From: Hamiltosporidium tvaerminnensis FI-OER-3-3 | Taxonomy: Eukaryota; Fungi; Microsporidia | NCBI GenBank assembly: GCA_022605425.2 | Contig: JAKIMF020000005.1 | Span: 248,001-312,000 of the forward strand | DNA length: 64,000 nt | Reading direction: 5' to 3' | Part shown: piece after piece, positions 5,261-57,698 of the stretch | How positions within the stretch are numbered: the stretch's first letter is position 1 | Layout of the letters: each line of letters begins with the position of its first letter | The notes under the pieces: generated by a model | What the model saw: the letters and a program-made list of their open reading frames with translations, nothing else | Database searches by the model: none | Told to the model about the DNA's origin: nothing | Made by a program: the position numbers and the translations under genes

Positions 5261-5821
5261 ATGAATAAATCTTCTTTTGCTGAAAATTATAAAAAAAATT
5301 TAGAAAAAATACTTCTTAAATATTCAAATATAAATGATGAAAAAGAAATTGGAATTGATTTATTTGAAAGAAAATCAAATAATAGGAAATCTAATGACAA
5401 TGAATTAAATAATAGAAAATTAAGAAATAAAGAATCAATTAATACAGAATTAAGAGATATAAAATCAGATAGAAAATTAAGAAATAAAGAATTAAATAAT
5501 AAAAAATTAAATAATAGAAAATTAAATAATGGAAAATTAAGAAAAAGAGCCTCAATTAATAGAAAATCAAATAATACAGAATCAAATAATAGAAAATCTA
5601 ATAATAAAGAATCAAGTAATAGAAAATTAAATGTGGAGGAAGACAATTATTATAATGCTTTCTTTAGTAAATCACATAAAAGATGTCTGACTCAGCAAAA
5701 AGATTTTAAAACGGTGGATAAACTTATTGGTTCGTATGGGTTTAATATTATTTTTGATACACTTTTTTCTGATTGTAATTTTGATACTTTATATGAGAAA
5801 GTAATTGATTATAATTTATAA
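5261..5821 (+). CDS. Hypothetical protein with an internal 15-nt (N-N-R-K-L/S) repeat expansion
   Basis: 186-aa ORF with a CCC motif directly before the ATG (AAAACCCATG). Unique N- and C-termini flank a 5-aa repeat. Confidence 0.65.
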   Translation: MNKSSFAENYKKNLEKILLKYSNINDEKEIGIDLFERKSNNRKSNDNELNNRKLRNKESINTELRDIKSDRKLRNKELNNKKLNNRKLNNGKLRKRASINRKSNNTESNNRKSNNKESSNRKLNVEEDNYYNAFFSKSHKRCLTQQKDFKTVDKLIGSYGFNIIFDTLFSDCNFDTLYEKVIDYNL

Positions 5822-16731: not shown

Positions 16732-17450
16732 TATCACATCTTTTTAAAACAGTGGCAAGTGTTATATTTGTTTTCATGACATTAACGCAGTTCTAGTTTT
16801 AGCATAAATAACTGCTACCCCAAAACTCCATCAGTAACTCCTGCGATACCTACGTCCCAAAGCCTTTTATCTACCAGGTGTGTAGAACCTAATTAATAGG
16901 CGAGGCAATTGCTCGGAGTTCGTTTATGTCCGTTGCATGGGTTGTGATCGAAGGCCAAAGCCCCCCCCTGAGCTCCCCCAAGACTATGTAGCATTCCCAC
17001 TTACTCTACACTTTCAGTCACCCAATAAACTTCTAGCAAAGATATATTTCAGAGATTTACATGGGGTTTACCTAGACAGTGCAATGTCATACCAACAGGT
17101 ATAACCTGCTACTTAGCTTTCCTGGCTTTAAATGGTTTTTTGTTTTATATCTCCCAGGCGCTAAGTCTTCTAACCCGAGTGAGCAAGGCTAGGTTTCCAT
17201 GCTTTTACATGGCAATTACCTACATGTTCAGCTGTGGTCTGCAATCTGGTTACATAAAAAACTACAAAAAAATTTGAAGAAAAAGTTTCGCAATTTTGTA
17301 GACCTCTCCTCCTCATACGACTTCCTATGGAACAACGGAAAATGTATTGGGGTATTATTCCCCCCAAAAATCTAAACAATGATCTTCACACCAGTTTCCC
17401 ACACTCATTGCCAAGCAGAAAGTTTTTTATGTGGTTATCCTCCTTCCACC
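16732..17450 (-). repeat. ~700-bp dispersed non-coding element, copy B
   Basis: Highly similar along its whole length to 34425-35150. No long ORF. Confidence 0.92.
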
Positions 17451-17808
17451 TATTTAATAGTAAAATAAATATATTCTTTAAATATTAAATTTCATGTTTT
17501 AATTACTTTGTAACTTATCTGTTATTTTTATATTTTAACTCTTTTTTAGCTTTTCCAGTTTCTTTTATAATCCCATCTTCTTTTAATAATTTCATCTTCC
17601 TTATAATACTTCATCCGCTTTTAATAATCCCATACTCTTTATACTATATCATCCTCTTTTTATAATACTTCATACTCTTTTTATATCCCATACTCTTTTT
17701 ATATCCCATTTTCCGATATTAAAATTTTTTCGATCAAAATTTTTTTTCCTGTAATTTTATAAATATAAATACCTTCCTAAAATAAAATGTCAATCACACA
17801 AAAGTTTT

Positions 17809-17827
17809 ACCCTACAAAAATAAAATG
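17809..17827 (+). promoter_or_regulatory. Microsporidian CCC-type motif upstream of the start codon (POL3 shown as example)
   Basis: CCC lies within ~15 nt of the ATG at 5261, 6653, 9362, 10061, 17825, 38938 and 54962; GGG at 29536. This is a known microsporidian transcription-start signal. Confidence 0.7.
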
Positions 17828-20800
17828 ACAAAAAAAACCGACACCGATTTAATATTTCTTTCTACACACATCGATAACCCACCAATATCACCAAACACAA
17901 TAAAAATATCCGGTATAACTCTACAAGGCACCCCACTGACACTACACGTAACAGACTTTAACCCATACTTCTACATAAGACCGCCCAATCCAGAACCAAA
18001 AAATTTTATTTCTTTACTTTCATCCGCACTCACAAAAAAAATGAACGAAAAAAGCAAATCAGTTCTCCTTCGAATAGAAAAAGTGTATAAAAAGAGTTTT
18101 TTATACTATTCCCCTACACCTGTACTTTTCTACCAGTTATTTTTCACCAACACTCTTCTTTTTTCACAGCTCACCAAAATACTTGAATCAGGTATTTACA
18201 TAGACGATGTTTCATACACATTCCAAGTTTTTGAATCCAATATACCACTTCCTATCAGATTTATGATAGATAAGGAACTTACAGGTATGTCATACATCAA
18301 AGTTACCAAATATAAAAAAATAAAAAATAAAAATTCTAATCAAAATAATTCAAATAATGAGACCAATATTGATAGTGGATGTACTACAACCAACACTAAT
18401 CCAACCAATACTGATAAGAATATATCTAATATAACTAAAAATAATACTGACATACCAAATACTTCACATTATATAGAATACATCACTTCACATACGAATA
18501 TTTCACACATCGATTCCATTACAACTCTTCCACCTCTAAAAATACTTTCTTTTGATATAGAATGTATAAGCAAGACTTCTTCATTTCCATCTGCAAAAAT
18601 AGATCCAGTAATACAAATAGGAAATATAATATCAGTAGATGGTTTGATATCAAAACACATATTTGCATTAGACAGCTGTGCAGACATACCAAATGCAACT
18701 GTACATTCATTTACTACAGAAACTGAACTTTTAAAAGAATGGATTATTTTTTTAATAAAAACAGATCCTGACATATTATTAGGATACAATATAACTAATT
18801 TTGATTTTCCATATTTGGTAGAAAGAAGTGAAACATTAAAAATTAAAGAATTTAAATTTATAGGACGAGACTCAAGTAGTATACGTATAAATACAAACAA
18901 CAACACAACCACTGTACATATACAAGGTAGAATGATATTTGATTTATACGTTATAATAAAAAAAGAGTATAATTTAAGATCCTACACATTAAATTCTGTA
19001 AGCGAATATTTTTTAGGAAATACTAAAGAAGATTTACCGTACAATTGTATGTATTCATTACAGATGGGAGATAAAGAAACAAGAAGAAGAATTGCTTTGT
19101 ATTGTTTAAAAGACTGTTTACTTCCGTTAAACATATTTGATAAATTAAATATTTTAATTAATTGTATTGAGATGTGTCGGGTTGTAGGAGTACCTATTGA
19201 GTATTTGAATAGAGGACAAGCTATACGTGTGTTTGCTATGATATGTCGTAAGGCAAAGTTTATGGGATATGTTGTTCCTGTTGTTGAGAATACGGAGGGT
19301 GAAAAGTATGAAGGGGGGTATGTTATGGATCCGGTTAAAGGATTTTATGAGGATTGTGTGGCTGTAATGGATTTTAGTTCTTTGTATCCGTCTATAATGA
19401 TTAGTAAAAATCTATGTTACAGTACTTTGGTAAGAAAAAAGGATTTTAAAGAAATTTGTGGGAACAAAAATGGGGAATTTGAGAAAGAGAGTGTTAGTTA
19501 TGAGGATAGCATAGGTGAAAGTGAATTGGAAGGAATGGACGAGGAATATGATAAGGGATTAGATGAGGGTGTTTGTGATAAGGATATAGATGTGGGTGTT
19601 AATGATAGGAGTAATGATAATTATCACCCTCTTAATACCAGTACTGATAAACAACAGGGTGTTAATAACAATAAAGATAAACAACACCCCTTTAACAACA
19701 CACCTAATAATTATCACCCCTTTAATACCAATGACCTTTGTTTAACACCTACAAACAACCTTTTTGTAAAAAAAGACATTTTAGAAGGTTTATTACCGAT
19801 AATTTTAAAAGAATTACTAGAAGAAAGAAAAAAAGCAAAAAAATCGTTAGAAATAGAAAAAAACGAACAAACCAAAGCATCTTTAAATGCCCGTCAACTA
19901 GCACTAAAGATATGTGCGAACAGTGTATATGGATTTACAGGTGCCAGTAAAGGATTTCTTCCATGTATGGAAATATCACAGAGTGTGACTTCATTTGGCC
20001 GCGAAATGATAAATTTTACACGAAAATTAATTGAAGAGAAATATGATGTTAAGGTTATTTATGGTGATACTGATAGTGTAATGGTTAGATTTAAAAAAAT
20101 AAGTGTTTCACAGATATTTCAAACTAGTAGAGATATATGTGAGTATGTTACACAGCGATTTGATAAACCTGTAAGACTTGAATTTGAAAAAGTTTATTGT
20201 CCCTTCCTCCTCATCAATAAGAAGAGATATGTAGGACTGATATGCAAGAGAGGAAGTGAGATGGAAGAGAAGGGTAAGGAAAGTAATGATAGTAAGGATA
20301 ATATAGAATGTAGGGAAAGTAATAGTAAGGATAATAGTAAGGATACTAAAAAAATTAATTTAGAAAGACATAAAGACAATGATATAAGAGATAATTTAGA
20401 TAAAGAAAAGGAGCTTAATAAAGATAATAATAATGATATAAGGGATACTAATAATAACACACTTATTCCTTATAAAATAGATAGTAAGGGAATAGAAACT
20501 GTTAGAAGAGATAATTGTAAATTAGTAAGAAATGTAATGGAAAGTTGTTTGTATAAAATTTTATGGGAAAAGGATTTAGAAGGAACAAAAGAATTTATAA
20601 AAAAAGTAATAACGGATTTATATATGAATAAGGTAGATATAAGTCAATTAGTGATAAGTAAATCTTTAACAAAAAGTAAAGAAAATTATTTAAGTAAAGC
20701 AGCACATGTAGAATTAGCAGAGAAGATGAAGAAAAGAGGAGAAGTATATGGATTAGGAGATAGAATACCGTATGTAATAATAAAAGGTAGTAAGGGTATG

Positions 20801-21301
20801 GCAGCATATGAAAGAGCAGAAGATCCTGTTTTTGTACTGGAAAATAATATACCGTTGGATGTGGAGTATTATATAGAAAATCAGTTATCTAAACCGATAC
20901 ATAGATTATTTGAACCTATAATGGATAATGTAAGTGTTTTATTGAAAGGAGAGCATACAAGAAGTAGAATGGGAGTTTCTAGTAAGTTTAAAGGAAGTAT
21001 GAATGTATTTTTAATTAATCAAATTAAGTGTTTGGGGTGTAAAAGTAAAGGAAAAATTTTGTGTGATTTGTGTAGTAAAGAGTATTCTAAGTATTATTTG
21101 GGATGTTTAAAAAAAGTAGAAGAAAGTAAAAAAGTGTATTGTAAGTGTTGGGTTGAGTGTCAGCGATGTATAGGAAGTGTTATGGGAGAAGTTATATGTG
21201 CTAACAGAGATTGTGATATATTTTATTTAAGAAGTATGGCTAAGAAAGAGTTGATAGAAGAGACAGAGAAATTAGAAATTTTAAAGAAATTTGAGTGGTA
21301 A
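17825..21301 (+). CDS. POL3: DNA polymerase delta catalytic subunit with three low-complexity insertions
   Basis: ExoI SFDIEC, GYNITNFDFPY, DFSSLYPSIM, KICANSVYGFTG, YGDTDS, KKRY, KGIETVRRD, and C-terminal CysA/CysB motifs (CLGC...CDLC; CQRC...C..RDC). Confidence 0.97.
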   Translation: MTKKTDTDLIFLSTHIDNPPISPNTIKISGITLQGTPLTLHVTDFNPYFYIRPPNPEPKNFISLLSSALTKKMNEKSKSVLLRIEKVYKKSFLYYSPTPVLFYQLFFTNTLLFSQLTKILESGIYIDDVSYTFQVFESNIPLPIRFMIDKELTGMSYIKVTKYKKIKNKNSNQNNSNNETNIDSGCTTTNTNPTNTDKNISNITKNNTDIPNTSHYIEYITSHTNISHIDSITTLPPLKILSFDIECISKTSSFPSAKIDPVIQIGNIISVDGLISKHIFALDSCADIPNATVHSFTTETELLKEWIIFLIKTDPDILLGYNITNFDFPYLVERSETLKIKEFKFIGRDSSSIRINTNNNTTTVHIQGRMIFDLYVIIKKEYNLRSYTLNSVSEYFLGNTKEDLPYNCMYSLQMGDKETRRRIALYCLKDCLLPLNIFDKLNILINCIEMCRVVGVPIEYLNRGQAIRVFAMICRKAKFMGYVVPVVENTEGEKYEGGYVMDPVKGFYEDCVAVMDFSSLYPSIMISKNLCYSTLVRKKDFKEICGNKNGEFEKESVSYEDSIGESELEGMDEEYDKGLDEGVCDKDIDVGVNDRSNDNYHPLNTSTDKQQGVNNNKDKQHPFNNTPNNYHPFNTNDLCLTPTNNLFVKKDILEGLLPIILKELLEERKKAKKSLEIEKNEQTKASLNARQLALKICANSVYGFTGASKGFLPCMEISQSVTSFGREMINFTRKLIEEKYDVKVIYGDTDSVMVRFKKISVSQIFQTSRDICEYVTQRFDKPVRLEFEKVYCPFLLINKKRYVGLICKRGSEMEEKGKESNDSKDNIECRESNSKDNSKDTKKINLERHKDNDIRDNLDKEKELNKDNNNDIRDTNNNTLIPYKIDSKGIETVRRDNCKLVRNVMESCLYKILWEKDLEGTKEFIKKVITDLYMNKVDISQLVISKSLTKSKENYLSKAAHVELAEKMKKRGEVYGLGDRIPYVIIKGSKGMAAYERAEDPVFVLENNIPLDVEYYIENQLSKPIHRLFEPIMDNVSVLLKGEHTRSRMGVSSKFKGSMNVFLINQIKCLGCKSKGKILCDLCSKEYSKYYLGCLKKVEESKKVYCKCWVECQRCIGSVMGEVICANRDCDIFYLRSMAKKELIEETEKLEILKKFEW

Positions 21302-21512
21302 ATCAATAGAATATTATTTTATTAAAAATTATTTGATTAGAGATGAATTCTATAAAAAAGAATGTGAAATTAGATATTTGAGTTGTAAATCAAAAGAATA
21401 TTATTTTATTAAGAGATGTTTGATTAGAGATGAATTCTATAAAAAAGAATGTGAAATTAGAGATTTGAGTTGTAAATCAATAGAATAGTTATTTTATTAA
21501 AAATGATTTGAA
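21288..21512. repeat. 87-bp tandem repeat (about 2.5 copies) starting inside the last codons of POL3
   Basis: TTGAGT(G/T)GTAAATCAA occurs at 21291, 21378 and 21465. Confidence 0.9.
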
Positions 21513-21847
21513 TAGTATATTATCTATTATAAGAATAAATGTTTAGAAAAAGAAATGTTTGGAAAAATATTTAACCGAAATAAATAATTCAAATATAATA
21601 ATTAAGTAGATATTTGTAATTAAAAATATTTTTATAAGAATATTTAATTTAGATTAATTATATTAAATTGGAAAGTATTTTTAAACAATAATTTAATATT
21701 TTAATATAAAAATATTCTTATAAATAAAATGTACTTTTTTCTATATTTTATTTTTTTATTTAAAGTATTTCTTTGTAAATTTTATTTTTTTGTTTACATG
21801 TATTTCTTTGTATATTTAATTTTTTTATTTAAAAGTATGACTATAAA

Positions 21848-21955
21848 AAAAGAGTCGGATTTGGAAGAAGAGACAAAAGTGGTTAAAGAGGTAGAAGAAA
21901 ACATATAAAAATGGTAAAAATATTTTAACCCAGAATTTTATTAAATAAAAAAAAT
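21848..21955 (+). mobile_element. Solitary 3'-end fragment of the RLE non-LTR retrotransposon
   Basis: Nearly identical to 61781-61880 (AAAGAGTCGGATTTGGAAGAAGAGAC...CCAGAATTTTATTAAATAAA). Confidence 0.92.
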
Positions 21956-22205
21956 GAATATAAAAAACTTGTAGGATAGACTTTGGAGAATATTAAGCCT
22001 GTACATTAGGATGTTTCTTACACTTGATAGTAATATAAAATAATACTTTATAAAAATTAAAGAAAGGTAAATATAAGTGTTTATAAAGTAAAAAGTTTAT
22101 TGTGTGAATATATTCTTCTTTTCTAGTCTAATTTAAAAATCTTTTATTTTTAATTTTTAATAAAATTTTAAAATGTATTTATTTAAGGGTTAAATTAGAT
22201 GATAA

Positions 22206-25200
22206 TTTATTTAAAAAAATTCGGAGTTAAAATATTTTTACCATTTTTTACATGTTTTCTTCTACCTCTTTAACCCCTTCTGTCTCTTCTTCCAAATCCG
22301 AAACTTCTTTTATATTTATCGTCGGTTCCTTTTTCTGAAATAAGAGGTGTATTATTTTTTGGTTTTAAATTTTCTGCACCATCTTCCACTCTACTTGCTA
22401 CTTTTAAAGAGGTTTTAATTCCACATGCATCTCTGCTCTCATAATAACACCCATTGATGCTCTCTCCCCGCTCTCTTTGTCATTTAGTCCTGACTCAAGT
22501 CCTCTTCGTCGATCAAAGGAAATTGTTTCGACTGTCTCCTTAAGTACTATAGACTAAATGTATGCCTCTACATTTATTGGGTATTTCTAGTCTTTTAAGA
22601 TGAGATTTATGGTATTTTGTCACGATACCGTCCCAGGTCATCACATAAGGGATTATCTCAACACTACACTTATAAATAAGACCCAACTCATTGGCTAGCA
22701 GGTCATACTGTCTAAGTTTTTCAGATTCAACTATTTGAAGTGAATCTTGGGAAGTGATTCCTTCTTCAATGAGTGTTATCTTATTCTTCTTCTTATCTAA
22801 AATAAATATGTCGGATCTGTTTCTCCGAATTTTAACATCAGTTTTTATTCCGATGTCCACTCTTATCTCTGCATACTCATTATCAAGAATTTCTTGAACT
22901 GAGTAACTCCTAATTCGTTTTGAGGACTTAAACTTATATCTATTTAGGAGAAGTAGGTGTAGGCATCTAACCACTTCATTATGCCATCTGGTGTAGTCAT
23001 GGCCTAGCATTTTTTCACATCGAGTTGCTAGATGATCTACAGTTTTACCAGACTTCCCGTAATGTTGACACACACCATCTGCTCCCCAGAATACATTTCT
23101 ATCCTGGATATAGCAGAACACAGCTTCATTTCGTGGCCTAATATTTCCTCTCTTTAGCCATCTTGAAGAGTCACTAACACACTCAAGCTCATTATTTCTT
23201 GCATTATATAACTTTGAATGGAGTTTTCGTTTTTCTATTTCGTTATATAGTTTTGCAAGTTGAGCTTCTTCTAAACTTTTCTTAGTGACTTCTTCTACCA
23301 ACCTGTACTTTACTTTTAAGAAGCCTTTTATTAGTGCAAGATGGGTTTTATTATTATTCTCCACCTTGAGGATTGCTGCTCGTCTAGTTGATATTTCTTT
23401 ACTTTTTTCCAGACAATCCAAGAGTTGCAGAAGCATATGTTCGCTTCGCAACTCAACACTATGTAGGCCTCTTCCAAGTTCTGTTCTAGGAAGGTATAAA
23501 CGCTCTTTACATCCTGGGCGGAGATGTATCTTATTCTTCACCAACACCGCACGCACTGCATCATCTAACTTAGAGAAGTCAGCCGGTTCAAGTCGGAGTA
23601 CTCCTATGTGGTAGTTGATTTACGATATCGCATGTTGATTGATTGCAGAAAATAAATTTTTTGCATTTAATCTAGTGTGACAAAGTCTTTCAACTCTTGA
23701 TAAAAGTTTGCTCTGTACTTCTTCAAATGAGCTACGTGTTGGAATTCCTCTGCTATCTTCTATTATTCCTAAATATTTGTAAACACTAACACCTTCTATA
23801 AGAGTAGCAGTATCTTCACAACACGTATCATTTGTGGCTGACTTCTCTTTGTTAATCTCTAACCCAATCACCTCTAAAAATTCCTTTGCCTCGCCTGTCA
23901 TAGCACTCAATGTGGAGCTGTCTTTTGCAAGGAGCTTAAGATCATCAATAAACAAGAGATGATATGTAGAATGGGATTCTGCATCTGTTTGTACTGTCAC
24001 TTTTGTGTATTTTTCATTAAGCTTTCGGCTTAATGGATCCATACGTAACACAAATAACAAAGGTGACAGACTATCTCTCTGTAGAATCCCTCTATCAATA
24101 TTCTTGCTCATGATTTTTTCAGGCCCTACTGATATATCAATTTTCCATTTTGGTATAATTACCTTGATAAATTTCAGGATCCAATCAGGTAAATTAAGGG
24201 TTTCAATGTATTGAGTCAAATAAGCGTGATCTATTAAATCATAAGCTTTTTTAACATCAATCCATGTTGCCTTAAGATTGTTTCCGTACTCTTTATTTAA
24301 GGCGATATTCAGTAGAGCTTGCTCTTTCGCTCCCTACACGCCTCTTACCTCCCCTAATTAGTTCTCTGCAAGCAACCCTCGCCTTTCCACTTCAATTTGA
24401 ACGACTTTCGTTACACACTTTGTCGTTAACTTGTAGAGGTTGGACATACAAGTGATTGGCCTGTAGTCAGAGCCTCTTTGTGGAATTCCTTTGGGTATCA
24501 AATAGGTAAGTCCGCAGTAAAACCAATCAGCTTGAGGTGTTCCTTCTAAACATATAACTCGCACAATATCATAAAGATATTTGTGTAGAGTTGTAAGTTT
24601 CTTAATGAAAAAATTGTAAATACCATCAATTCCAGCAGCTTTCAAATTAGGGAGCCAATTAATGATATTTACAAATTCATCAAGTGAAGGAACCGTGGTC
24701 GGATGATTATCTGATACAAATGGAATCAAATAATCATCATACATGACTGTGTCATCATTTTTGTTCCACATTGTAGACCAAAAACTCACAATTTCATCAC
24801 GACTGACCACATGCTCGGATTCCACACGCTCATATAACCTACGATAAAATCTACCTCGGAAAAGCTCACACATACGATTCTCTTTTCGGAATTTCTTCCT
24901 ACTTTCATGCATCGTAATTTTTTTCTCGTAAACGTTCAAAGACTCATTCTTCTTAACCAAAGCCTAAGAAAGATCAGTTACACTGCTCAAGTTTAAATTT
25001 AACTCTCGCATGATTTTCTTAAGGCTCGTCGTTTCCGAAGTGGAGAGCTTTTCCTGCTTACGAGCCTTCTCGAGAAGATCTTTAGAAAGTACTAACTTAG
25101 AAATTTTACTTTCTATGTTTTCCTTCCAAGCAAATCTAGGCTTTTCTTTGCGTGTTAGCTCGTCATAGCATACCTGGGCTGCTTGGATTATCCGTGCCAC

Positions 25201-25976
25201 TGCAGTTATCGTCATCGGCACACAAGAATCAGAATACTCACCGATAATTCGATTAATAAGGTCCAAAACTTTACTGTCAACCAATTCACTTGGAAGCTTT
25301 CGAGTTCGGACCACCACTTTTCCAATTTCCTTCTCCGAGATTTCTTTGATTTTACTCAAAAATTTATCTCTCGGGTTTATGTACTCCGTGGTGTCAGTCA
25401 GGGTGCATGGCTCAGTGAGACAAGTGGCGATTCTACGTCGCTCTCCATTCTCTTCTTGCCTAGCTTCCCTTTCTGCCTCATTTTGTGCGAGTTTTTTAAA
25501 CGCATCGATATCTAATGTGCAGCCAAATTTCTCATTATAGTACCTCAGAGTAGCGGGCCAGCCATTTCTGGGCATTCTCTCAAACCTTTTTTGCACTGTT
25601 AGAATAGAATCTAGGCCAGTCTTGCTCTACGACTGTGACAGAGTCAAGTATTGAGTGCAATACCATCAGTCGATTCTCTTCTAGACTGGTATCTGTATTG
25701 AGGTTTGTCATGCCGTTGGCTGGTCCACACGCAGTTGCATCGGTACCAGAAGACGAGGGTATGGTGTCAACCAAGCAGACTGGACTAGTCTGACAACTAC
25801 TACTTGGTGGGTGGGTGATGTTATGAAAGGTCGGTGGAGGTGGAAGTCTTTCGGATAACATTGCTACATCTACATCACACATCAAAATCTCTCCTGCGCT
25901 GTTCTCCAAGTTGTTTACAGCCTTTATTTTTTCATTTCTTATATTTTCGCTGTCTACTTTTTTTTCTTCTACCCAT
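22206..25976 (-). mobile_element. Near full-length non-LTR retrotransposon, RT + CCHC + PD-(D/E)xK restriction-like endonuclease (R4/Dong-like), disrupted
   Basis: ORF pieces carry KAAGIDGI, YRPITC, GILQRDSLSP, LFIDDLKL, YKYLG, CQHY...HLATRC and (R)SDIFILD...IEE...EKLRQY. Several stops and frameshifts; AT-rich 3' tail. Confidence 0.93.
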
Positions 25977-26194
25977 AAATACAAATTAAGAGATAAAATT
26001 TAATTTAATAATGATAAATGTCCTTTTAAAGTGTAAATAAATATAAAACTTTTCTAATAATTCGATTTCGGTATAAATTGTAAATAATTATAAATTTCCT
26101 TGTAAATTGTAAATAAAACTTTTTCTAAAAATTAAACACCTCAAATCTAAAAAAAATACTGCCTTTTTAAAATAAATTTATTTTAAATTTAAAA

Positions 26195-27502
26195 TTATGA
26201 TTTCGAGCCAAATATTGAATCCCATTTTATATATTCTTCTAAATCACTCTTATTAACGCTTTTTCTAATTTGAGTACTGGCTTTTAAAAAATCATTAAAC
26301 ACTATTGGTCTCGTAGAATCATTAGAAACCTTTAAAATATCTTCAATTTCACGTAAAGGTTCCATTGCGGCTTCTCTACAAAGATTGTATAAATCAGAAC
26401 CGGAATAGCCATCAGTTAATTTTGAAATTTCTTCAAGTTTATCTTCAGTTATTAGATTGGTAAATTCTTTTATAAGATTTCTTATTAAATTTTTTCTTGC
26501 TTCGTTTTCTGGTAACGGAACATAAATTCTTTTTACGAGTCTTCGTCTTGCTGCTTCGTCTATTTCTTGGGGTCGATTGGTTGCGCCAATAACTAATATT
26601 TTATCTGTTGATAAAGTAGACACACCATCGAATTGCACCAAAAATTCTGTTTTAATTCTTCGAGTACCTTCATTTTCGTTTTCACTTCTTTGAGACAACA
26701 AAGAATCAATTTCATCAATAAAAATTACAGAAGGCTGAAGTTCTCTTGCCAAAGAAAACAATGCTCTAACCATTTTTTCACCTTCACCTACCCATTTAGA
26801 TGTGAGTGAAGATGCACTTATAGAAAAGAATGTGGCTTTACACTGACTGGCTATACATTTTCCTATCATAGTTTTTCCATTGCCTGGCGGTCCAAAGAGC
26901 AGCATTCCCTTAGAAGGTTCTCTTAATCCTTTAAAAATATCAGGGCGAATCATTGGCCATACCACAATTTCATTTATTGTTTTTTTAACACTTTCTAATC
27001 CTATAATATCTTCCCATTTGATGCTTACAGTTCCTTCTAATATTTCACTTCTAATTCTATCATAAATTGCTTGATTCTGTGTATTTTCTTTTGAATTTGT
27101 TTCTTTTAATTTCTTATTTTGTACCGAATTGTTAGTTGAAGAATCGGTATTTTCTATATTTTGATTATTTGCTTTCTTAAATTCGTTATTGGTAAATTTC
27201 TTATTGTTTAGTTGATTTTGACACGAACATAATTTATCTGTAAAAAAGTCACTACTTATTTCTTTTTCTGTCAATAAAGAAGATATTTTTTCTAAATCTG
27301 CTGGTATACCAACACCAATATAATCAGATAGAACTGGAAAATTTGAATGGTTCTTTGAAACATTATAGAGAACAGATTTATAGAGGTTTTCATATTGGTT
27401 CTTTATATTTTCACTACGTAACTCTTTTGGAATAAAAGTGGGACATTCCGGAATATTATTTTCTTCTAATTTCTTCTGCAGTTCGAAAAATTCTTTTTTC
27501 AT
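26195..27502 (-). CDS. Meiotic-clade AAA+ ATPase, fidgetin-like 1 / Sap1-Yta6-like
   Basis: [62 protein letters not shown]. The likely start is MKKEFF (27502); the extension to 27652 is AT-rich noise. Confidence 0.9.
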
Positions 27503-27687
27503 GCATAAATTTTGAAACAAAATATTTATTTCTTTTTCAAAAAAATAAATGATATGAATCAACAAAATTTTTATATTTGAGCAATAAAATTTCCAAAAGA
27601 ATAAATTTATTTTATTTAAGAAAAATACATGGATTTTATTAAAAGAGAGCAATGTTTTATATTTATTGCCTTTATTTTCAATTTAAT

Positions 27688-28395
27688 CGTTGAGAGCGCA
27701 TAAACACTAAAACCTATCCACCGGCAAAAAGTATAAAATTGATGTAAAAATTATTGTTGAGATTTTCGGTGAACCAGAAAACGTTTAAATTTTCGGTTGT
27801 TCAAAGCATAAGTATATACAAGAAAGTCTACAAAACTTTGAGGAATTTTCCACCAAAATAATTTGTTATTTTTTATGTTATCAAATTCTAAACAAAGATT
27901 GAATTTTTGGCAAATTTTCATATAGAATCATAGAAGCCTAACATTTCTTACTCGAGTTAGTAGACTATACGTCTGGAGAATACAAAAAAGCATCATTTTA
28001 AAAGCCAGAAATGCTAGGTAGCAGGTTATACGTGTTGTTATGATATTTCAATGTTTAGGTGAACATAATTGTAAGTCACCAACAAATATTTTAGTAGAAA
28101 TTCTGTTCAGGTCGAAAAGTGTGGTGTAAGTTAGAATGCTGCTGGTCTCGGAGATGCCTAAGGGAAGTTTCTATATCGATCAAGGTTTGAGCGACGAGCA
28201 TGAACAAACTCCGGGTAACGACCTCGTACATTAAGGGAACTCATCACATTTTTTATTAGAAAAGCCTTGTGAATATGTATAGTAGGAGATACCGATGAAA
28301 TATTAGAGAGAGATTAATTATCTATGTTAAACCTAGAAATGCGTTAATGTCATGAAAACAATATAACATATGCTACTCTTTTTAAAAGATATAAA
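27688..28395 (+). repeat. ~700-bp dispersed non-coding element, copy D (strongly diverged)
   Basis: Collinear blocks TTACTCGAGTTAG, AAAGCCAGAAATGCTAGGTAGCAGGTTATAC and CCTAGAAATGCGTTAATGTCATGAAAACA. Confidence 0.8.
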
Positions 28396-29535
28396 CATAT
28401 TAAATTAAACTTTCAAATATATTCTTTCGTAATATATTTAGCCAAAATTCAAAGGAAAATCATATTTTTTTATAATGCATGCCAATAAAAATAAAAGTTT
28501 AAATCATACAAATATCAAAATTATTAAACTCAAAGTTTGTAGAAATTTCAATCAAAAAATTGATACAAAATATATAATAGAGTTAAAATAAAGTGGAATA
28601 GGCAAATAAACCCGACATAGGGGATATAAGTTTAGTCATAAAAAGAAAAATATGCTTCATTAATTAGATTTTAAAATCAACAGCATCAAATTTTAGTTTT
28701 TTGTTTCTATTTATAGATTTTAAAACATTAAAGTATAACTTACAGTTTTCCGATGCTTTATTTGAATGTTTAATATTAAAATAATTTCATGGAAATATGC
28801 AAAAGTCTATTATAACATTCAATAAAATTGGATAGGGTATTTAAAAGAACACGAAATAACTTATGAATAAATACTATAAATTCACCAGGTAAAACTAAAT
28901 AAATATTCAAATTATTTATTTTTATATCATGGCAAAAATTCAAGTAAAGTCTTAAGTTTAAAACGAAAGGTAAAGCCAATATAAAGTTACTTATATTGTG
29001 TAATATATCTTGAAAAATTGTAAAAATACATCAATATGTAAAAATTAAAAATAAAGAATCAAATATGCCAATATAAATACAGATATGAAATTATAGGTAT
29101 AAAATCAAGTCAAATCTTAACGATGAAACGAGATAAATAAATAGTTAATAAGAATGAATAATTAAAAAATGGCAGTTCAGATGCGACAGCACAATAAAAA
29201 ATTGAAAAAATATATAGTGCCAGATATATTTAAAAAGGTTTCTGATGTATTTATATTATAATATTAAGAAACTCTGTTTATTTAAGCTTAAAATGCTATT
29301 GGAAACCAAAAAGAATCTCGTTTAAATTTTTAAATTGTAATATTGCTTAAAAATAGTTTTTTAATTTTTAAAATATTTAATTTTAATATAAAATTTTCTT
29401 TCTTTGATTTTTTGATAATAATACAAAAAGAACGATCTTGTCCTTAATTTATTCTATATACAAATTTATCGAAAATCCTGATATATTGCGATAATATTAT
29501 TTTTTAATAAAATTTATTTGCAAGGGTAGCAAGTT

Positions 29536-31851
29536 ATGATGTGTGAAGCAATCTTGAAGGCAAATAATATAAAAACAAATTTCACATTTTGGTCGTTATG
29601 TATTCTCTCAATATCCGAAGTAATATTAACACAAAAGACAATCGCTATAAATTTTTATGAAACAAAAGAAATCCAATTAACAGAGAATGGAACGAAGAAT
29701 TGCGATTATTTTGATGAGTTTTCCTATTTTGACGATCAAAAACCCGTTCTTTATAGTTTGGATTCAAATAGTAAAGTTTTACAGGTATTTATAATTAATT
29801 TGGAAACTTTCTTCTTGAATTTTTCTAATGAAGAGGAAATACAAGAAAACCAGCAACATAACATATATATAAATATAAATATATTGAGTTATAACGAATT
29901 TTTATACTTTTATAATATAGTAATGTGTTTTCCATTTTTAATTGAAAATGTGAACGAAATCAGATATCAGCTTATGCTTAAAATATGTGATATTCTCAAG
30001 ATTAAAACAAATAAGCTTTTTGAAAAATTTATTCGTTTGATACTATTTTTTCAGATATTTAATCCAGGAGCAACAAACAAATGGAAAGTCATATCTACTT
30101 CAAAAAGTTATCGATGTTCTGGTATTATATCTAAAAAGGCTATTGTAGAATTTTTTAAAATTTATTTTATTTCAGAAAAAACACAAAAAAAGATAAAAGA
30201 TATTTCCCGTGCTTTATATTTAACTGCTGACTTTTCCTTTGATTTTATAAAGTTGACCGATGATTTTCTCTATCTCGATGACGATATTCTAAATGAAATT
30301 TTAGAAAAAGTTAAAAAATCAAATGATGATCTAAAAATATTTGATTATATATTTTGTATTCATGAATTTACCTGCATATTTTTGAGTGAGATATCTTATA
30401 CCGATGTATATGATCAGTTATTTGATTCGTCGCTATTTAAAAATCTTAATGAAATATTTATAAATCGATGTCTAAATGCAGATGTATTAATTCAAAAAAT
30501 TTATAATTCTTGTGGTTCGAAATGTATTAAAACCTTAAATATTATTGAATCGGATTTTACAATGAAATATGAAATTCCATGGTTAAGAAAGCTTGATTTC
30601 GAGGCTGTAAATTATATTGTTGGAAATTATGGCCGTTTAGCCATTTTTTACAACTCAGATGCCAGTCCACTGGTTCAAAATATTTTTTCAAGATTTATAG
30701 ATGAAATATACGAAGAAAACAAACCAAATATTTTTGTGCGCACAAGTGAAGTATCTTGTTATGATCAAGATAAAAAGTTTTTCGTTCAGTTTTATCAAGA
30801 AAGAAGTAAATTAGAGAATTTTACAACACCAAATTCACCAATCCAAACATATATCTACACTGAATTAATCAATGCTTTTTTATCATTCAATTTCTATATT
30901 ATAAATTTTTCTGAATTAAAGAATATAAAGATTCATCTTTCAAATACCTGCATTAAGGATTTCAACATACGTGAATCCGAAATACTAAACAATATAAGTA
31001 CAGTGAGTATCGTTGATTCCACACTCGATGCTATTTTTTTGTCGAAAATTCTAATGCTTCTTTCTTTGAAATATGTTATTTTTATGAAATGTATAGTTAC
31101 ATTCCATAAAAACGTGATCGATTTTAATGTAAACAGAAAAATTGTAAAACTTTATTTTGGAAATTCTTCAATTGATGACCAGAATCATTTTTTTAAATTT
31201 ATAAATCATATGGTAGGCTTGAAAATACTAGATATCCACAGTTCTAGTTGTTGTAAAAATTCAAATATTTTTGCATTTAAAACAGATAGTAGTACTTTAG
31301 ATTTTTCCAATCTTAAGTCTTTAAGATATCATGTTTTTTACTTCAACAAAGATATTAAACCAGTATTTCCAAAATTTTTACAACTTTTACAATTTGATTT
31401 TGGAGTAAATTATCCAAAGGGTACACTCAATAAGATATTTTATAACAATAATTTTAGCTGTCTTGAGAAATTAAATATTTATGGAAGTTACATAGGAAAA
31501 AAAGATGAATTAGCCTTTGAAAATTACATAAATCTTCTTTCTCTATGTTTTTTTGGATATTCCGAATGTTCGGAAATGAATTTTTGTAAACTTTTCAATT
31601 CGAATAATATATACTCATTGAAGAAACTAAAACTTCCTGATATAGAAATTACTTGTTTGGATTTGGAATTTCTCTCAAAACTCAAGTGTTTAAAAAATAT
31701 ATATATTTATAGTTTAGCCCCACAAGTCAATATATTTTATTTCATTACATCATTATTATTTGTCCAAAAAATTGAAATCGCTAAAAAATCAAATTATATA
31801 AATGAAATATATGAAGAGTTTGGTAAAAAATTAAAATCTAACATGATATAA
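29536..31851 (+). CDS. Lineage-specific LRR-like protein with an N-terminal hydrophobic segment (family member 1)
   Basis: 771-aa ORF. Hydrophobic FTFWSLCILSISEVIL near the N-terminus and repeated LxxLxL units in the C-terminal half. GGG motif before the ATG. Confidence 0.7.
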   Translation: MMCEAILKANNIKTNFTFWSLCILSISEVILTQKTIAINFYETKEIQLTENGTKNCDYFDEFSYFDDQKPVLYSLDSNSKVLQVFIINLETFFLNFSNEEEIQENQQHNIYININILSYNEFLYFYNIVMCFPFLIENVNEIRYQLMLKICDILKIKTNKLFEKFIRLILFFQIFNPGATNKWKVISTSKSYRCSGIISKKAIVEFFKIYFISEKTQKKIKDISRALYLTADFSFDFIKLTDDFLYLDDDILNEILEKVKKSNDDLKIFDYIFCIHEFTCIFLSEISYTDVYDQLFDSSLFKNLNEIFINRCLNADVLIQKIYNSCGSKCIKTLNIIESDFTMKYEIPWLRKLDFEAVNYIVGNYGRLAIFYNSDASPLVQNIFSRFIDEIYEENKPNIFVRTSEVSCYDQDKKFFVQFYQERSKLENFTTPNSPIQTYIYTELINAFLSFNFYIINFSELKNIKIHLSNTCIKDFNIRESEILNNISTVSIVDSTLDAIFLSKILMLLSLKYVIFMKCIVTFHKNVIDFNVNRKIVKLYFGNSSIDDQNHFFKFINHMVGLKILDIHSSSCCKNSNIFAFKTDSSTLDFSNLKSLRYHVFYFNKDIKPVFPKFLQLLQFDFGVNYPKGTLNKIFYNNNFSCLEKLNIYGSYIGKKDELAFENYINLLSLCFFGYSECSEMNFCKLFNSNNIYSLKKLKLPDIEITCLDLEFLSKLKCLKNIYIYSLAPQVNIFYFITSLLFVQKIEIAKKSNYINEIYEEFGKKLKSNMI

Positions 31852-32317
31852 TAATTCTTTTAAGATTGAGTCATTATAAGAATTTTCTAAAAAAAGTTTT
31901 AAAATTACTAAAGTAACTATAAATTTTAAAACAATACAATTATATAATCAAATGAAATTAAAAATTTTATAAACTTTTTTTAATATTATATTATCACTAT
32001 TATTTGGCTAGTGATGTTCATTTGAGCTCTTAATACTTCGTTATTTTTGTGCAATTTTAGAATGGTGATTATATTTATAAGTGATATTTGTATAAAAAAC
32101 TTAAATTTACCTGTAAATAACCTATGAGCACAATTAAATGTCGTAATCATATCCGATCCCCTATATTTATAAGATCTTTTTGTTTAAATTTCTATTTTTT
32201 TCCTACAAAGAGAAACCCATAAAAATGGGTTTTACAAAAAAAATATATATTTTTCCTAATTAAATTTCTTTCCGGATGTTCTAACTGGAAAAGTTTCAAA
32301 GAAAGCTTAAAATTTGG

Positions 32318-34413
<2,096 letters not shown>

Positions 34414-34424
34414 TTATTTAAAAG

Positions 34425-35150
34425 TATCACATCTTTTTTAAAATAGTGGCAAGTGTTATATTTGTTTTTATGACATTAACGCAGTTCTAGGTTTAACATA
34501 AATAACTGTTACCTCAACATTCCATCGGTACCTCCTGCAATGCCTACGTCTTAAAGCCGTTCATATACCAGGTGAGTAGAACCTTAGTAATAGACGAAGC
34601 AGTTTCCCGGTGTTCGTTACTGTCCGTATGATGGAGTGTGATCAGAGAGCCAACCCCTCTGGGCCCTCACAAGATTATGCGGCATTCTCACTTACTCTAC
34701 ACTTTCTGAATCTAATAAACTTTTAGCTAAGATATATTTCAGAGACTTACATGGGGTCCACCCAGACAGTGCAATGCCATACCAACAGGTATAACCTGCT
34801 ACTTAGCTTTCCCGGCTTTTAATGGGTTTTATTTTTATATCTCTCAGGCGCTCAGTCTTCTAACCCGAGTGAGCAAGGCTAAGTTTCCATGCTTTTACAT
34901 GGCAATTACCTACATGTTCAGTTGCGGTTTACAATCTGGTTACATAAAAAACTACAAATAAATTTGTAGAAAAGTTTCTCCATTTCTTAGACCTCTCCTC
35001 CTCCTAAAAACTCCCATGGAATAACCAAAAATGTAGTGGGGTATTATTCTCCCCCCAAGAAAAAAAAATTTAAGCAATGATCTTCACACCAGTTTCACAC
35101 ACTCATTGCCAAGCAAAAAGTTTTTATTGTGGTTATCCTCCCTCCACCAC
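34425..35150 (-). repeat. ~700-bp dispersed non-coding element, copy C
   Basis: TATCACATCTTTT...AGTGGCAAGTGTTATATTTG through GTGGTTATCCTCCCTCCACCAC, matching 16732-17450. Confidence 0.92.
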
Positions 35151-35324
35151 TAAATAAATAAAATAATTATTTAATAAATATAAAGAAATAAACCTTTAAT
35201 ACTAACCTTATATTTACCAATAAAATAATAAAATATTATCTTTACTATCTTTACTAATACACCAACCTTATCTTTACTAATAATATCTACCTTATTACTA
35301 ACACCTACTATCCCTACCACCAAA

Positions 35325-35580
35325 CATATAACTACCCCCTATCACTCAGTCCTATTTGTAATAACCCCACAACTCCTACCTATTAACCTTATCACTACCA
35401 TATAACTACCCCCTATCACTCAGTCCTATTTGTAATAACCCTACAACACCTATATATTAACCTTATCACTACCAATTAACTACCCCCTTCCTCGCCTTTT
35501 AAACCCCACCCTATTAACCTTATCACTACCAATTAACTACCCCCTATCACTCAGTCCTATTTGTAATAACCCTACAATCC
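35325..35580. repeat. Tandem duplications of the SEC31 3' end (last ~12 codons plus stop)
   Basis: ACTACCCCCTATCACTCAGTCCTATTTGTAATAACCC occurs at 35331, 35405 and 35536 (the real gene end), with a partial copy at ~35479. Confidence 0.9.
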
Positions 35581-38500
35581 CTACAACCCACACATCAACA
35601 CCTTTAACACCCCCATAACACCTAACAATATCCTCACACACACATCTAACCTTCTCATACCATACATCCCTTAAATCACATAACCTCTTCTCTTCTTCAC
35701 ATAATAATACCTCTTCCTCACTTACTATATATAACACCTCTTTTAATTTATTTAATATATCAATAGGTATATCATTCTTATTAATATTATTATAACACTC
35801 TAATCTACGTAAACATTCATTTATTTTATTCTTATAAATAAGACCCTTCTTTTTACTAGCTAATCTCTTAATTAATAACACCCTTTTATCAATAGTATTA
35901 ATAATATCAGTAGTGTTAGTGTTAGTGTGGGGAGGATTGTTATTTATATTAGTAGTAGTGTTAGTAGTAGGGCTAGGGTTAGTAGGAGGAGGGGAAGGAT
36001 AAGTATTAGTACTACTAACACCAATATTACTAGAAGTAGATAAGGGTGGTGATATAGGCTTGTTATATAAAGGTACTGTTCTATTCAATGGTTTAACATA
36101 TCCACTACCCATACTACTACTTATATTAGTATCTATTGGCTTTGTATATCCTGTTGTTCTTATATTATCTTCTTTATTATTAAAAGGTGTTGTATTAGTA
36201 GTATTTAAAGGGGGTGTTATTTTACTATTAAGTTGTCCATAGGTTTTACTGTTACGTAACTGTCCATAGGTATGTGGCTTAGTAGGTATATTAGTAGTAG
36301 GGGGTATGGGGGGTATGTTAGAGGGGGATATAGAAGGTGTGTTAGTAGAGGGCATAGAAGGTATGCTGGAAGTAGGTATGTTACCAGTATTACTAGTGTT
36401 GGGTATAGGGGGTGTGTATTGTCTAGTTAATGGTTTAGGAATTGAAGGAGTAACAGGGTGTTGGGGTGTAGGAGTAAAGGGGTGTTGTTTATAAGGATTG
36501 TTACCAACACCCTGTTGTTTATAAGTATTGTTGTTAAAGGGATGTAAGGCATTAGTAGGCTCAATAACACCCTTTAAACCACCAGTACTGTTACTAACAC
36601 CCTCTAATATATTATTCTTACCACTAACACCCCTTACTTCCATCTTACTTACCTTACTACTAACACCCTCTACCCTATCCTTATAACTTACCTTGTTATA
36701 CTTACTATACTCTCTCATTAAAATACTATCATTAACACCTCCCATAGTATAACACTCTCCTACAACACTACCATATTTCTTAAGTGTTTCTATTACTTTA
36801 AATACACTTTTAGGTATTTCAAATTCATTGTTACGTACCTTAAAGTATTTTTTTAAATTACCAGCAAGTAAATAACATATAAGTGAGTAATAAGTATAAG
36901 TGTTGTTAGTAAAAGGGTGTTGTTCATCAGTACTGTTGTTAATAGGGTGTTGTTCCTTAGTACTGTTGTTAATAGGGTGTTGTTCCTTATCCATATAATT
37001 AACACCCTCTTCTTTACTAGTACTGTTATTAACACCCTCTTCTTTAATAGTACTGTTATTATCACCCTTTACACTACTAACCTTATCACTAACACCCTCT
37101 AATCTACTATTACTCAGTCTATCACCTAATATTGTAAGTAACTCACTATACTCATCATAACACACATCAATATAACACAACAAATATAAAACAACATACC
37201 ACTGTTCTAACACAACATTATCAACAACATACTTATATTCATTACATAACACACATAACAATAAATGTATTTTATCATTTTTAGTTTTATTTCTTAATTC
37301 TTTTATTTTTACTTTTATTTCTTCTTTATTCATACATAGTAGTATTGTATATATTAAAGGGTGTTGTTCTTTGGATTTTAAAGCTAAGTCATAAGCATTT
37401 ATAAAGTCACCCTTTAACAAAGACAAAGTAATAACATCCTTTAAATCAAAGGAAATAAAGGTAGTGCTAATGGGGTGTTGTTTATTAGTACTATTACTAA
37501 GAGGGTGTTGTTTAATAGTACTGTCATTATCACCCTGTTGTTTACTAGTACTCTTAATAAGAGGGTGTTGTTTATTAGTACTGTCATTATCACCCTGTTG
37601 TTTACTAATACTGTCATTATCACCCTGTTGTTTACTACTACTATCCCTATTACTATCACCCTCTTCTAATCTATCCCTATTACTAACACCCTCTTCCAAT
37701 CTATCCTTATCATTATCACCCTCTAATCTATCCTTGTTATACTCACTAAATATTAAATCCCCAATCCTCTTCCTTACATCCCTACACAACCCCTTACCCT
37801 TATCTAATACATTACTACCCTTATCACTATCTACCATAATACTATATATACGATATATAAGTGTATTCTTATTAATATCACTAGACATATAAATCTTAGG
37901 TAATTTATAAATATTATAACACTTATTATTATAAGAATATAAATTATAAGAAGTAACAGTTAAATTAGAATTATTATAAGGTGTTATATAAGGAGTATTA
38001 TGTATATTAAGTATGTTAGTTAGTAATGTCTTACCATCTGTATAAGATATAGAAGAGAGAAGAGGAGTATAAGTGGAGAGTTGTAAGTCACTTATATTAT
38101 TAGAGGAGGTAGTAAAGGGATTAATATTATTACTATTACTATTATTAGTAGATATGCTGAGTGGCTGTGTGGTTATGGAGGTGGGTGTGGTGTATAGAAG
38201 GAAAGGGTCATCACTATTACTATTGTGTATGGAGAATGTGTTGAGATATTTGGTGGTGACTAAAGTGGTGGTTGTATCAGTGGAGAGGTCAAAGGAAAGG
38301 ATGGAGGTGGGAGAAGAGGCAAGTATAGAAGTGGTGGAGAGAGGGTGCCAGAGTATCTGAGTGATGTGTTGTAAATGTGGATGTGAAATACGAAGTACTT
38401 CTTTTTTCTGTCTTAAATCTAAAACAACAATACTTCCGGTGGTGGTGCCTGCACAGAGGATGTGTGACACTTTGGGGTTAAAAGAAAGTGAAGAAATATG

Positions 38501-38938
38501 AAAAGTGTCGGGTTTTATTTGAGGGGCTAGAAATGGCTTGTCGGGGGTGTTAATATCATATAAAATTATTTTTGAAGAAGAACCGCCAATGGATAAAAGG
38601 TGTTTGGAATGATTATATGACATACCAGTTATATCACCAGTTAGATGTGTACTGTTAGTGTAATACGGGTGTAAAGTGTCATCGTAATGTTTAAATATTT
38701 GAAATGTACCGTTTTCTTGACCGGCGGATAAAAATGAGTAGGAAGGTGATTCACACCAAAGTACTGTGTTAAAACGGAGGTCTTGGTCGAGAGTGGTGGT
38801 TTTGTTTGTTTTGTAGTTGTGTAGTGATATGTCGGAACATGATGAGAATGAAGGATCGAAGGTTCTGGATTTCGTGGCTAGTACTGCTGTGGGAGAGAAG
38901 GAAGAGAATGAAACTATGCATCTTTTGTTGAGGAGCAT
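35537..38938 (-). CDS. SEC31: COPII outer coat protein Sec31-like, with repeat insertions
   Basis: N-terminal ATKSRTFDPSFSSCSDISL (cf. Sec31 GT..G..D.SFS....LE), WD40 repeats (FNPKVSHILCAG, IVVLDLR, WHP), helical middle, Pro-rich linker and helical C-terminal domain. CCC motif before the ATG. Confidence 0.8.
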   Translation of the reverse strand: MLLNKRCIVSFSSFSPTAVLATKSRTFDPSFSSCSDISLHNYKTNKTTTLDQDLRFNTVLWCESPSYSFLSAGQENGTFQIFKHYDDTLHPYYTNSTHLTGDITGMSYNHSKHLLSIGGSSSKIILYDINTPDKPFLAPQIKPDTFHISSLSFNPKVSHILCAGTTTGSIVVLDLRQKKEVLRISHPHLQHITQILWHPLSTTSILASSPTSILSFDLSTDTTTTLVTTKYLNTFSIHNSNSDDPFLLYTTPTSITTQPLSISTNNSNSNNINPFTTSSNNISDLQLSTYTPLLSSISYTDGKTLLTNILNIHNTPYITPYNNSNLTVTSYNLYSYNNKCYNIYKLPKIYMSSDINKNTLIYRIYSIMVDSDKGSNVLDKGKGLCRDVRKRIGDLIFSEYNKDRLEGDNDKDRLEEGVSNRDRLEEGDSNRDSSSKQQGDNDSISKQQGDNDSTNKQHPLIKSTSKQQGDNDSTIKQHPLSNSTNKQHPISTTFISFDLKDVITLSLLKGDFINAYDLALKSKEQHPLIYTILLCMNKEEIKVKIKELRNKTKNDKIHLLLCVLCNEYKYVVDNVVLEQWYVVLYLLCYIDVCYDEYSELLTILGDRLSNSRLEGVSDKVSSVKGDNNSTIKEEGVNNSTSKEEGVNYMDKEQHPINNSTKEQHPINNSTDEQHPFTNNTYTYYSLICYLLAGNLKKYFKVRNNEFEIPKSVFKVIETLKKYGSVVGECYTMGGVNDSILMREYSKYNKVSYKDRVEGVSSKVSKMEVRGVSGKNNILEGVSNSTGGLKGVIEPTNALHPFNNNTYKQQGVGNNPYKQHPFTPTPQHPVTPSIPKPLTRQYTPPIPNTSNTGNIPTSSIPSMPSTNTPSISPSNIPPIPPTTNIPTKPHTYGQLRNSKTYGQLNSKITPPLNTTNTTPFNNKEDNIRTTGYTKPIDTNISSSMGSGYVKPLNRTVPLYNKPISPPLSTSSNIGVSSTNTYPSPPPTNPSPTTNTTTNINNNPPHTNTNTTDIINTIDKRVLLIKRLASKKKGLIYKNKINECLRRLECYNNINKNDIPIDILNKLKEVLYIVSEEEVLLCEEEKRLCDLRDVWYEKVRCVCEDIVRCYGGVKGVDVWVVGIVGLLQIGLSDRG

Positions 38939-38984
38939 TTTTTTAGGGGGTGGAAATAAAGGTTTTAAAAATAGGGAATAGAGA

Positions 38985-39230
38985 TTAAGTTTAAGGGTTA
39001 AGTTAGAGTAATATTAGTAAAGGGTTAAGTTAGAGTAATATTAGTAAAGGGTTATATTATATGTATATGGTTACATATATTATTATGGTTATAGACAGTA
39101 ATAATATATGTTTATAGACATTAGAGACAGTATAGAGATTAGAGACAGTATAGACATTAGAGACAGTATAGACTATAGAGTCAGGATAGACATTAAAGAT
39201 ATATAGACATTAAAGACAGTATAGATTAAC
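38985..39230. repeat. Short tandem repeats upstream of SEC31
   Basis: 27-bp AAGGGTTAAGTTAGAGTAATATTAGTA x2, then an ~18-bp TATAGACATTAGAGACAG array. Confidence 0.8.

Positions 39231-57059: not shown

Positions 57060-57698
<639 letters not shown>

Follow-up and report, generated by a model that had tools for sequence, protein, structure and literature searches.

The window analysed here, a 64,000-nucleotide (nt) stretch of contig JAKIMF020000005.1 of the microsporidium Hamiltosporidium tvaerminnensis, contains the genes for the catalytic subunit of DNA polymerase delta (POL3) and for SEC31, both of which carry in-frame insertions assembled from short tandem units with a common core. The original prediction, made from the sequence alone, proposed that a single 30-nt quasi-palindromic repeat had invaded these two unrelated genes in both orientations. 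The arrays are real and represent a form of coding minisatellite. The host identities hold (by Pfam and by the UniRef names of cluster members), all four arrays lie where they had been placed, and the two exact words said to be shared between POL3 and SEC31 are correct to the letter. Defined by alignment, the POL3 insert begins upstream of the stated 19540, at about 19463. Every array core in the window occupies one codon phase, as claimed, and the 11-nt core pattern is matched 12 times in the window against 0.29 expected (0 of 100 shuffles). The order of peptide variants along the arrays, EGV followed by QQGV and QHP, was also borne out, apart from a single place in the first SEC31 array where it is locally reversed.

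The features of the two genes are collected in Table 1. POL3 is longer than its microsporidian orthologues, which measure about 960-980 amino acids (aa). Its core-bearing insert contains G-type cores at 19567, 19594 and 19657 and C-type cores at 19623, 19683 and 19713, and the skew switches near 19620. The loop that receives it had been described as normally short; this is true of Encephalitozoon, Nosema and salmon, but in Gurleya vavrai and four other microsporidian-like sequences the loop is enlarged as well, and lacks the motif there. Because these expansions arose independently, the loop following NLCYSTL is a tolerant one. The Gurleya vavrai gene, with this loop expanded in the absence of any core, also runs, though weakly, from a C-rich beginning to a G-rich end. 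In H. tvaerminnensis, a tandem repeat of 87 nt (window 21285-21515) includes the stop codon of POL3, and other assemblies predict longer, repeat-derived C-termini. Six other genes of the window possess zero or one core each and almost no skew.

Table 1. Genes, inserts and skew domains of the POL3 and SEC31 loci (window coordinates).
Feature	Position	Strand	Remarks
POL3, DNA polymerase delta catalytic subunit, 1158 aa	17825..21301	+	C-rich 5' part, G-rich 3' part
POL3 C-rich low-complexity insert(s), aa about 171-232	18335..18520	+	without core
POL3 in-frame insert, aa 547-638, after NLCYSTL	19463..19738	+	G-rich half, then C-rich half
POL3 G-rich low-complexity insert, aa 807-875	20243..20449	+	without core; skew 0.94 to 0.52 along its length
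Skew domain around POL3	16950..22230		bounded by intergenic G-to-C switches near 16954 and 22233
SEC31, 1133 aa, WD40 N-terminus, proline-rich C-terminal region	35537..38938	-	
SEC31 array 1, nine in-register units of 30-36 nt	37460..37741	-	switch near 37585
SEC31 array 2, seven 30-nt units (four G type, three C type)	36893..37120	-	switch near 36984
SEC31 array 3, degenerate units	36449..36690	-	switch near 36560
Kilobase-scale skew domain around SEC31	34650..40300		coding strand C-rich upstream, G-rich downstream; flanked by non-coding tandem repeats

Genome searches covered the H. tvaerminnensis assembly of 21,638,905 bases in 17 contigs, while composition and inserts were studied in a sample of about 300 kb chosen around motif matches, from which gene counts are extrapolated. 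The motif is by no means limited to POL3 and SEC31. Its 8-base core, GGGTGTTA, is present 6,387 times in the genome, compared with 288 occurrences of the reversed control, and two 15-nt unit centres return 341 and 177 matches (controls: 0). A 27-nt unit is matched exactly 14 times on several contigs, always in open frames and in one phase, and the matches to the QQGV word on contigs 1 and 2 comprise 93 in sense and in frame, three in sense in another frame, and none in antisense. At least 20 unrelated housekeeping genes contain full units in frame; besides POL3 and SEC31, the hosts include PRP8, a Ski2/Brr2-like helicase, IleRS, PI4 kinase (PI4K), HDAC, TGT, a WD40 protein, TAF2, myosin, RPA2, Sec7-like, ATR-like, VPS13 and CPSF_A-family proteins, and a Myb protein. 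About 15 gene loci were found in 3.8 Mb, which would extrapolate to 70-90 genes carrying the exact words. RPA2 alone holds seven inserts (1523 aa as opposed to about 1050), and inserts account for about 40% of all residues across the host open reading frames (ORFs) in the sample.

The inserts are in frame, sense-oriented and hydrophilic, and are located in variable loops. Their dominant periods are 30 and 27, well within the 10-100 bp range of minisatellite units, and 326 of 348 core-bearing ORF rows are multiples of three; this near-universal keeping of frame argues for translation of the arrays. Non-coding arrays also exist, in which the cores are spaced near 30 nt and not in triplets. No HINT splicing domain was found among the Pfam matches of any host ORF. 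A protein search with the SEC31 array (targets 0.55-1.75 times the query length) returned 17 matching proteins, all 17 from Hamiltosporidium, and the motif is absent from the Gurleya and Edhazardia loci examined and from the metagenome contigs searched, which supports a genus-specific family.

Large, unspliced in-frame amino-acid insertions have been reported previously in this organism under the name O. bayeri (Corradi 2009, PMC2784321). That report describes 14 proteins with inserts of 15-57 aa, in conserved proteins but outside their functional cores, for which reverse-transcription polymerase chain reaction (RT-PCR) showed retention in the mRNA. These are almost certainly the same objects as the arrays described here. 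Asn-rich expansions of MCM proteins are also on record in this lineage (PMC6944219). The shared core, the polarity, the flank skew and the sharing between genes feature neither in the text of PMC2784321 nor in that of PMC6944219; a literature search of incomplete coverage found no description of the first three either.

The assembly contains long runs of poly-A and frameshifts that disrupt several of the host genes, which could lend some credit to the idea that the arrays are artefacts of assembly. The same arrays, however, recur in independent Illumina assemblies of other strains and of H. magnivora, which rules out misassembly; the SEC31 stretch is present in 20 sequencing runs from seven studies, and PMC2784321 documents such inserts by RT-PCR. 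An artefact is, in our estimation, next to impossible.

Comparison of these assemblies shows that the arrays vary by whole units, as minisatellites do. The POL3 insert of H. magnivora carries one extra 30-nt unit, SEC31 array 2 has one more unit in three other assemblies, and in two other assemblies the central QQGD/QHP units of SEC31 array 1 are replaced by EEGV-type units. Indels of 30, 57, 60 and 90 nt separate strains, species and paralogues, the larger ones consisting mostly of whole units. The anticipated insertion polymorphism was therefore found as length polymorphism, but not as presence or absence: no empty-site allele was seen in POL3, SEC31, HDAC, RPA2 or PI4K among the few assemblies compared, the databases containing no close outgroup. 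The gene for PI4 kinase is itself present as two inverted copies (contig 1, about 1.17 and 1.27 Mb) that differ by whole units (57-60 nt).

The main clue, absent from the first reading, is a strand-symmetric polarity that reaches synonymous sites outside the repeats. A G core precedes a C core in 53 of 56 arrays, and the GC skew is higher in the 5' half of 122 of 131 internal inserts (29 host ORFs), including 32 of the 36 without any core; the inserts defined by alignment show the same polarity in 11 of 11 cases. The switch carries 300 nt into the synonymous sites of the conserved flanks. At four-fold sites G/(G+C) is 0.67-0.83 before an insert and 0.23-0.36 after it, and the frequency of third-position G in K, E and Q codons, at a distance of 21-50 codons, is 0.41 before and 0.16 after (p 2e-11). 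In the stretches that separate inserts, a flip from G- to C-leaning is seen at four-fold sites, in the third position of K, E and Q codons, at pyrimidine third positions and in the choice of serine codon, out to 100 codons, and flanks defined by alignment follow the same synonymous trend. Since synonymous sites outside the inserts flip as well, the bias is not a protein effect. Each insert thus has a G-to-C switch at its centre, the G-then-C polarity reads alike on both strands, and the strand bias around the arrays extends into the silent sites of the neighbouring gene. The spacing of switches peaks at 400-600 nt, with hardly any below 300 nt, and switches also flank genes: whole host genes run from C-rich to G-rich, and the intergenic switches have the same polarity.

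A comparable pattern is known from fungal gene ends (PMC3315797), where C-rich 5' ends, G-rich 3' ends and G-to-C switches between genes were described and their cause was left unknown. In Hamiltosporidium, by contrast, the skew is far stronger, affects only some genes and recurs within genes every 400-600 nt, at repeat arrays. This likeness raises the possibility that the inserts mimic transcription boundaries, acting as cryptic terminators, promoters or pause sites under the fungal gene-end bias, with the repeats amplifying CCC/GGG promoter-like and AATAAA-like words. Such an explanation overlaps with the repair-based reading preferred below, but would place transcription rather than repair at the root. 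It draws on the course of the skew along host genes and between them (with a weak version at Gurleya POL3), on the generality of CCC/GGG promoter motifs in microsporidia (PMC2803860), on the presence in central units of AATAAA or ATTAAA, the poly(A) signal of the species (PMC10542269), and on unit scaffolds that follow the coding strand. AATAAA is, however, also a plain N-K codon pair, functional terminators within POL3 or PRP8 would be costly, six other window genes are almost devoid of cores and skew, and identical units in different genes are not explained by transcription alone. Mimicry of transcription boundaries is hence possible but unlikely.

The claim that the repeat occurs in both orientations proved true only of its 7-11-nt core. 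The EEGV and QHPL cores are reverse complements of each other and equally G/C swaps of each other, because the A/T skeleton of the core is self-complementary, but whole units are sense-oriented: words of at least 24 nt shared between genes are sense-sense by 122 to 1. The proposed fold-back is similarly limited to the core and does not extend over the insert. The 5' half of an array aligns with the reverse complement of its 3' half over 11-14 nt only, while direct alignment of the halves, with G and C merged, scores 28, 55, 45 and 19, and the AT skew is +0.16 and +0.17 in the two insert halves. The data thus favour halves that are direct repeats with G and C swapped, rather than inverted arms, and both inversion of whole units and a hairpin spanning the insert are ruled out by the sense-sense sharing and the half alignments. 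Antisense readings of the units are hydrophobic, so selection alone could enforce the sense scaffold.

The core centre reads GGG in 176 cases and CCC in 213, each mixed form occurring at most three times, and genome-wide 518 of 577 core centres are the two main words. As intermediates are almost absent, the core changes as a block, which fits the suggested flip of a GGG/CCC loop, or conversion. The block change may come about by local template switching in a small hairpin or by conversion from another unit.

The units are also shared between genes. Cross-gene units within two mismatches exceed a codon-column shuffle (71 against 0.3, 219 against 84 and 27 against 5.9), half of the distinct units have their nearest neighbour in another gene, and the exact tracts common to different genes are mostly one unit long. 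This sharing fits either short ectopic copying or old shared sub-types, between which the shuffle null does not separate. The notion of a repeat that spreads between genes can accordingly be kept as a shared, frame-preserving family with unit sharing above shuffle expectation, but not as an invertible element or one with fixed ends.

A selfish, invertible element, in which a mobile unit was inserted either way through reverse transcription or templated repair, possibly seeded by a long interspersed nuclear element (LINE), would account for an identical 27-mer at 12 loci on nine contigs and for 30-nt units that recur letter for letter in as many as three genes. Contig 1 carries an APE-RT LINE whose ORF2 contains, about 400 nt from its end and read in a different frame, a sequence close to the unit. 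This match is real but not significant (E about 0.17 genome-wide, about 0.004 per Mb), and the flank of the core differs in four of six copies, which makes the LINE a doubtful donor. Its protein relatives are only about 30% identical. The longest core-bearing tract shared between genes measures 46 nt, there are no fixed ends, the strong sense orientation argues against free insertion, no presence/absence polymorphism was seen in POL3, SEC31 or HDAC, and the synonymous flank skew is left unexplained, which makes such an element improbable. The LINE belongs to a young family (including L019:4607-9558, minus strand) whose copies are 99% identical, with a TTTTA-repeat tail and an intact ORF2 of 1195 aa.

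Rickettsia palindromic elements, to which the repeat had been likened, are single, dispersed palindromes of about 100-150 bp that are homologous from end to end. The two systems have in common a DNA repeat translated in frame within loops of unrelated, conserved proteins of an intracellular parasite. The arrays described here differ in being tandem, variable and polarised: homology does not run from end to end (46 nt at most, in arrays that vary in length and make-up), and complementarity covers 11-14 nt instead of the whole element, with a palindrome of only 11 nt. Another parallel is offered by the megasatellites of Candida glabrata (PMC2566889, PMC2919712), which are also coding tandem repeats with motifs recurring in arrays on different chromosomes, and for which motif transfer between arrays has been proposed. 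Those motifs are 135 to over 300 bp long and reside in adhesin and cell-wall genes, whereas the 27-30-nt units of Hamiltosporidium, well short of 135 bp, occupy housekeeping genes and form a polar G-to-C gradient.

Low-complexity insertions in Plasmodium, another AT-rich parasite, are likewise Asn-rich hydrophilic loops with length polymorphism. We know of no shared oriented core or polarity in them. They are cited as similar in PMC2784321.

The head-to-head order of G strand and C strand is also that of a telomere fusion, as would result if a telomerase-like activity had added G-rich tracts to both ends of a break before these were joined. Telomerase is present, the telomere repeat of H. tvaerminnensis is TTAGGG (PMC10542269), and two fragments of TTAGGG repeats suffice to spell the core. 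However, the halves are direct repeats of one A/T scaffold, and most of the unit is not telomeric. Furthermore, TTAGGG is not enriched in G-rich windows (94 observed, 136 expected), a count that lends no support to the suggestion of a telomerase-like origin for the main family, and the arrays are not built of TTAGGG as interstitial telomeres would be. We therefore consider telomeric healing very unlikely. Two or three TTAGGG copies do occur in a minor family encoding NPNPNKCINT, a second shared coding repeat found at position 169329 of contig 1 and at 24 more places (25 matches, seven contigs in all). It consists of these telomere repeats and a fixed 15-nt flank, with a central palindrome, and the C-strand lies on the coding strand at the loci seen; it could be a capture of telomerase RNA or of a subtelomere junction.

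A selected function is conceivable too, with the repeats serving as oriented sites for a Myb-type factor, as protein linkers or as mRNA stems. The core alone is invariant, while unit length and the remainder vary; the spacing of about 30 nt extends to non-coding arrays; the genome holds about ten Myb-domain genes; and the SEC31 arrays fold more stably than triplet shuffles. Yet the folding energy is the same when the halves are swapped, units turn over rapidly between strains, and the motif was not found in any other microsporidia located, in a lineage dominated by drift (PMC6944219). Selection for such a function is quite improbable.

The trigger is unproven, and the evidence points to a DNA-level process rather than a mobile element of two genes. 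Our preferred reading, to which we assign a probability of about 0.5, is that coding minisatellites grow at recurrent gene-boundary-like sites through strand-asymmetric mutation, slippage and short ectopic copying, the products being filtered by protein selection. The family, with units mostly of 30 or 27 nt and the core GGGTGTTA or its reverse complement, would grow inside long, old genes at sites that resemble gene boundaries, are probably nucleosome-poor and suffer breaks or gaps readily. To either side of such a site, one of the strands would be exposed or repaired differently, with a loss of C from left flanks and of G from right flanks. Units would be duplicated when this repair involves slippage or unequal conversion, and short ectopic templating between arrays could spread unit sub-types, the self-complementary 11-nt core flipping as a block by template switching or conversion. 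Purifying selection would then retain only in-frame, sense, hydrophilic readings, and drift in a vertically transmitted parasite may tolerate the bloat. The repeat family would thereby be passive and self-reinforcing, not an autonomous element. It is also possible, if doubtful, that the oriented core itself is causal, as a factor-bound site prone to breaks or gaps every ~500 nt whose repair writes the asymmetry and copies cores. If true, the core would spread without an encoded enzyme and would have remodelled about a hundred essential genes, as a hotspot motif that seeds itself and avoids the erosion which hotspots usually undergo.

In humans, minisatellites linked to hotspots have a core in common across loci. 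Mutagenesis at break hotspots comprises strand-asymmetric substitutions around a centre and insertion-biased repeat changes in multiples of the unit (PMC7615360), and break repair is the closest precedent that yields both asymmetry and unit gains. The arrays share with these systems the asymmetry around a centre, which includes neutral sites, the unit-multiple changes and the core common across loci; they differ in their smaller scale, in lacking a C-to-G excess among current polymorphisms and in lying within essential coding sequence. The repair genes detected (one Y-family polymerase, a weak Spo11-family match and telomerase, with no match to Ku in the genome) are compatible with break repair, but are not evidence for it.

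Several observations weigh against the repair-based reading. The classes of single-nucleotide polymorphism between strains do mirror the two insert sides, but isolated G/C polymorphisms form a minority (11 of 128 on the two sides), and the present-day strain polymorphisms show neither a REV1-type C-to-G signature nor an excess of G/C transversions. Resection footprints in humans, at about 2 kb, are larger than the 500-nt teeth seen here. Furthermore, the shuffle null destroys sub-type structure, and the unit sharing could instead stem from common ancestry long ago or from a small number of words that act as mutational attractors; the insert mask used for flank skew is based on composition, and insert edges may leak into the nearest bin; and the 300-kb sample was picked around motif matches.

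Other features of the window and genome deserve mention. Poly-A runs occupy window positions 32572-34411 (1,840 bases) and 57250-57496 (247 bases), and probably represent the tails of LINEs that artefacts of long-read assembly or of gaps have lengthened. A further non-LTR (long terminal repeat) retrotransposon family is represented by two broken copies, at 22540-25596 (minus strand) and 58082-61840 (plus strand). PRP8, VPS13, TAF2 and other large host genes are split by frameshifts in the assembly (including L033:2741-4484). These frameshifts are probably polishing errors in repeats, because the WD40 gene adjoining RPA2 exceeds its H. magnivora counterpart by one base. A small ORF at 5261-5821 contains a 15-nt coding repeat (17.8 copies) that is G-skewed and lacks the core, and three long lineage-specific ORFs (29536-31851, 40805-43150 and 48012-49862) appear leucine-rich-repeat-like, and are without a Pfam match and free of arrays.

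Given their share of about 40% of the host protein sequence sampled, the inserts are a major way in which proteins and the genome have become bloated, in a lineage famed for compaction. They reveal the tolerance of POL3, RPA2, PRP8 and IleRS for foreign loops, and are usable as variable-number tandem repeat markers for Hamiltosporidium, a parasite of water fleas. Finally, the arrays provide hundreds of internal replicates of the unexplained gene-end skew of fungi, the cause of which is made testable by public strain data.

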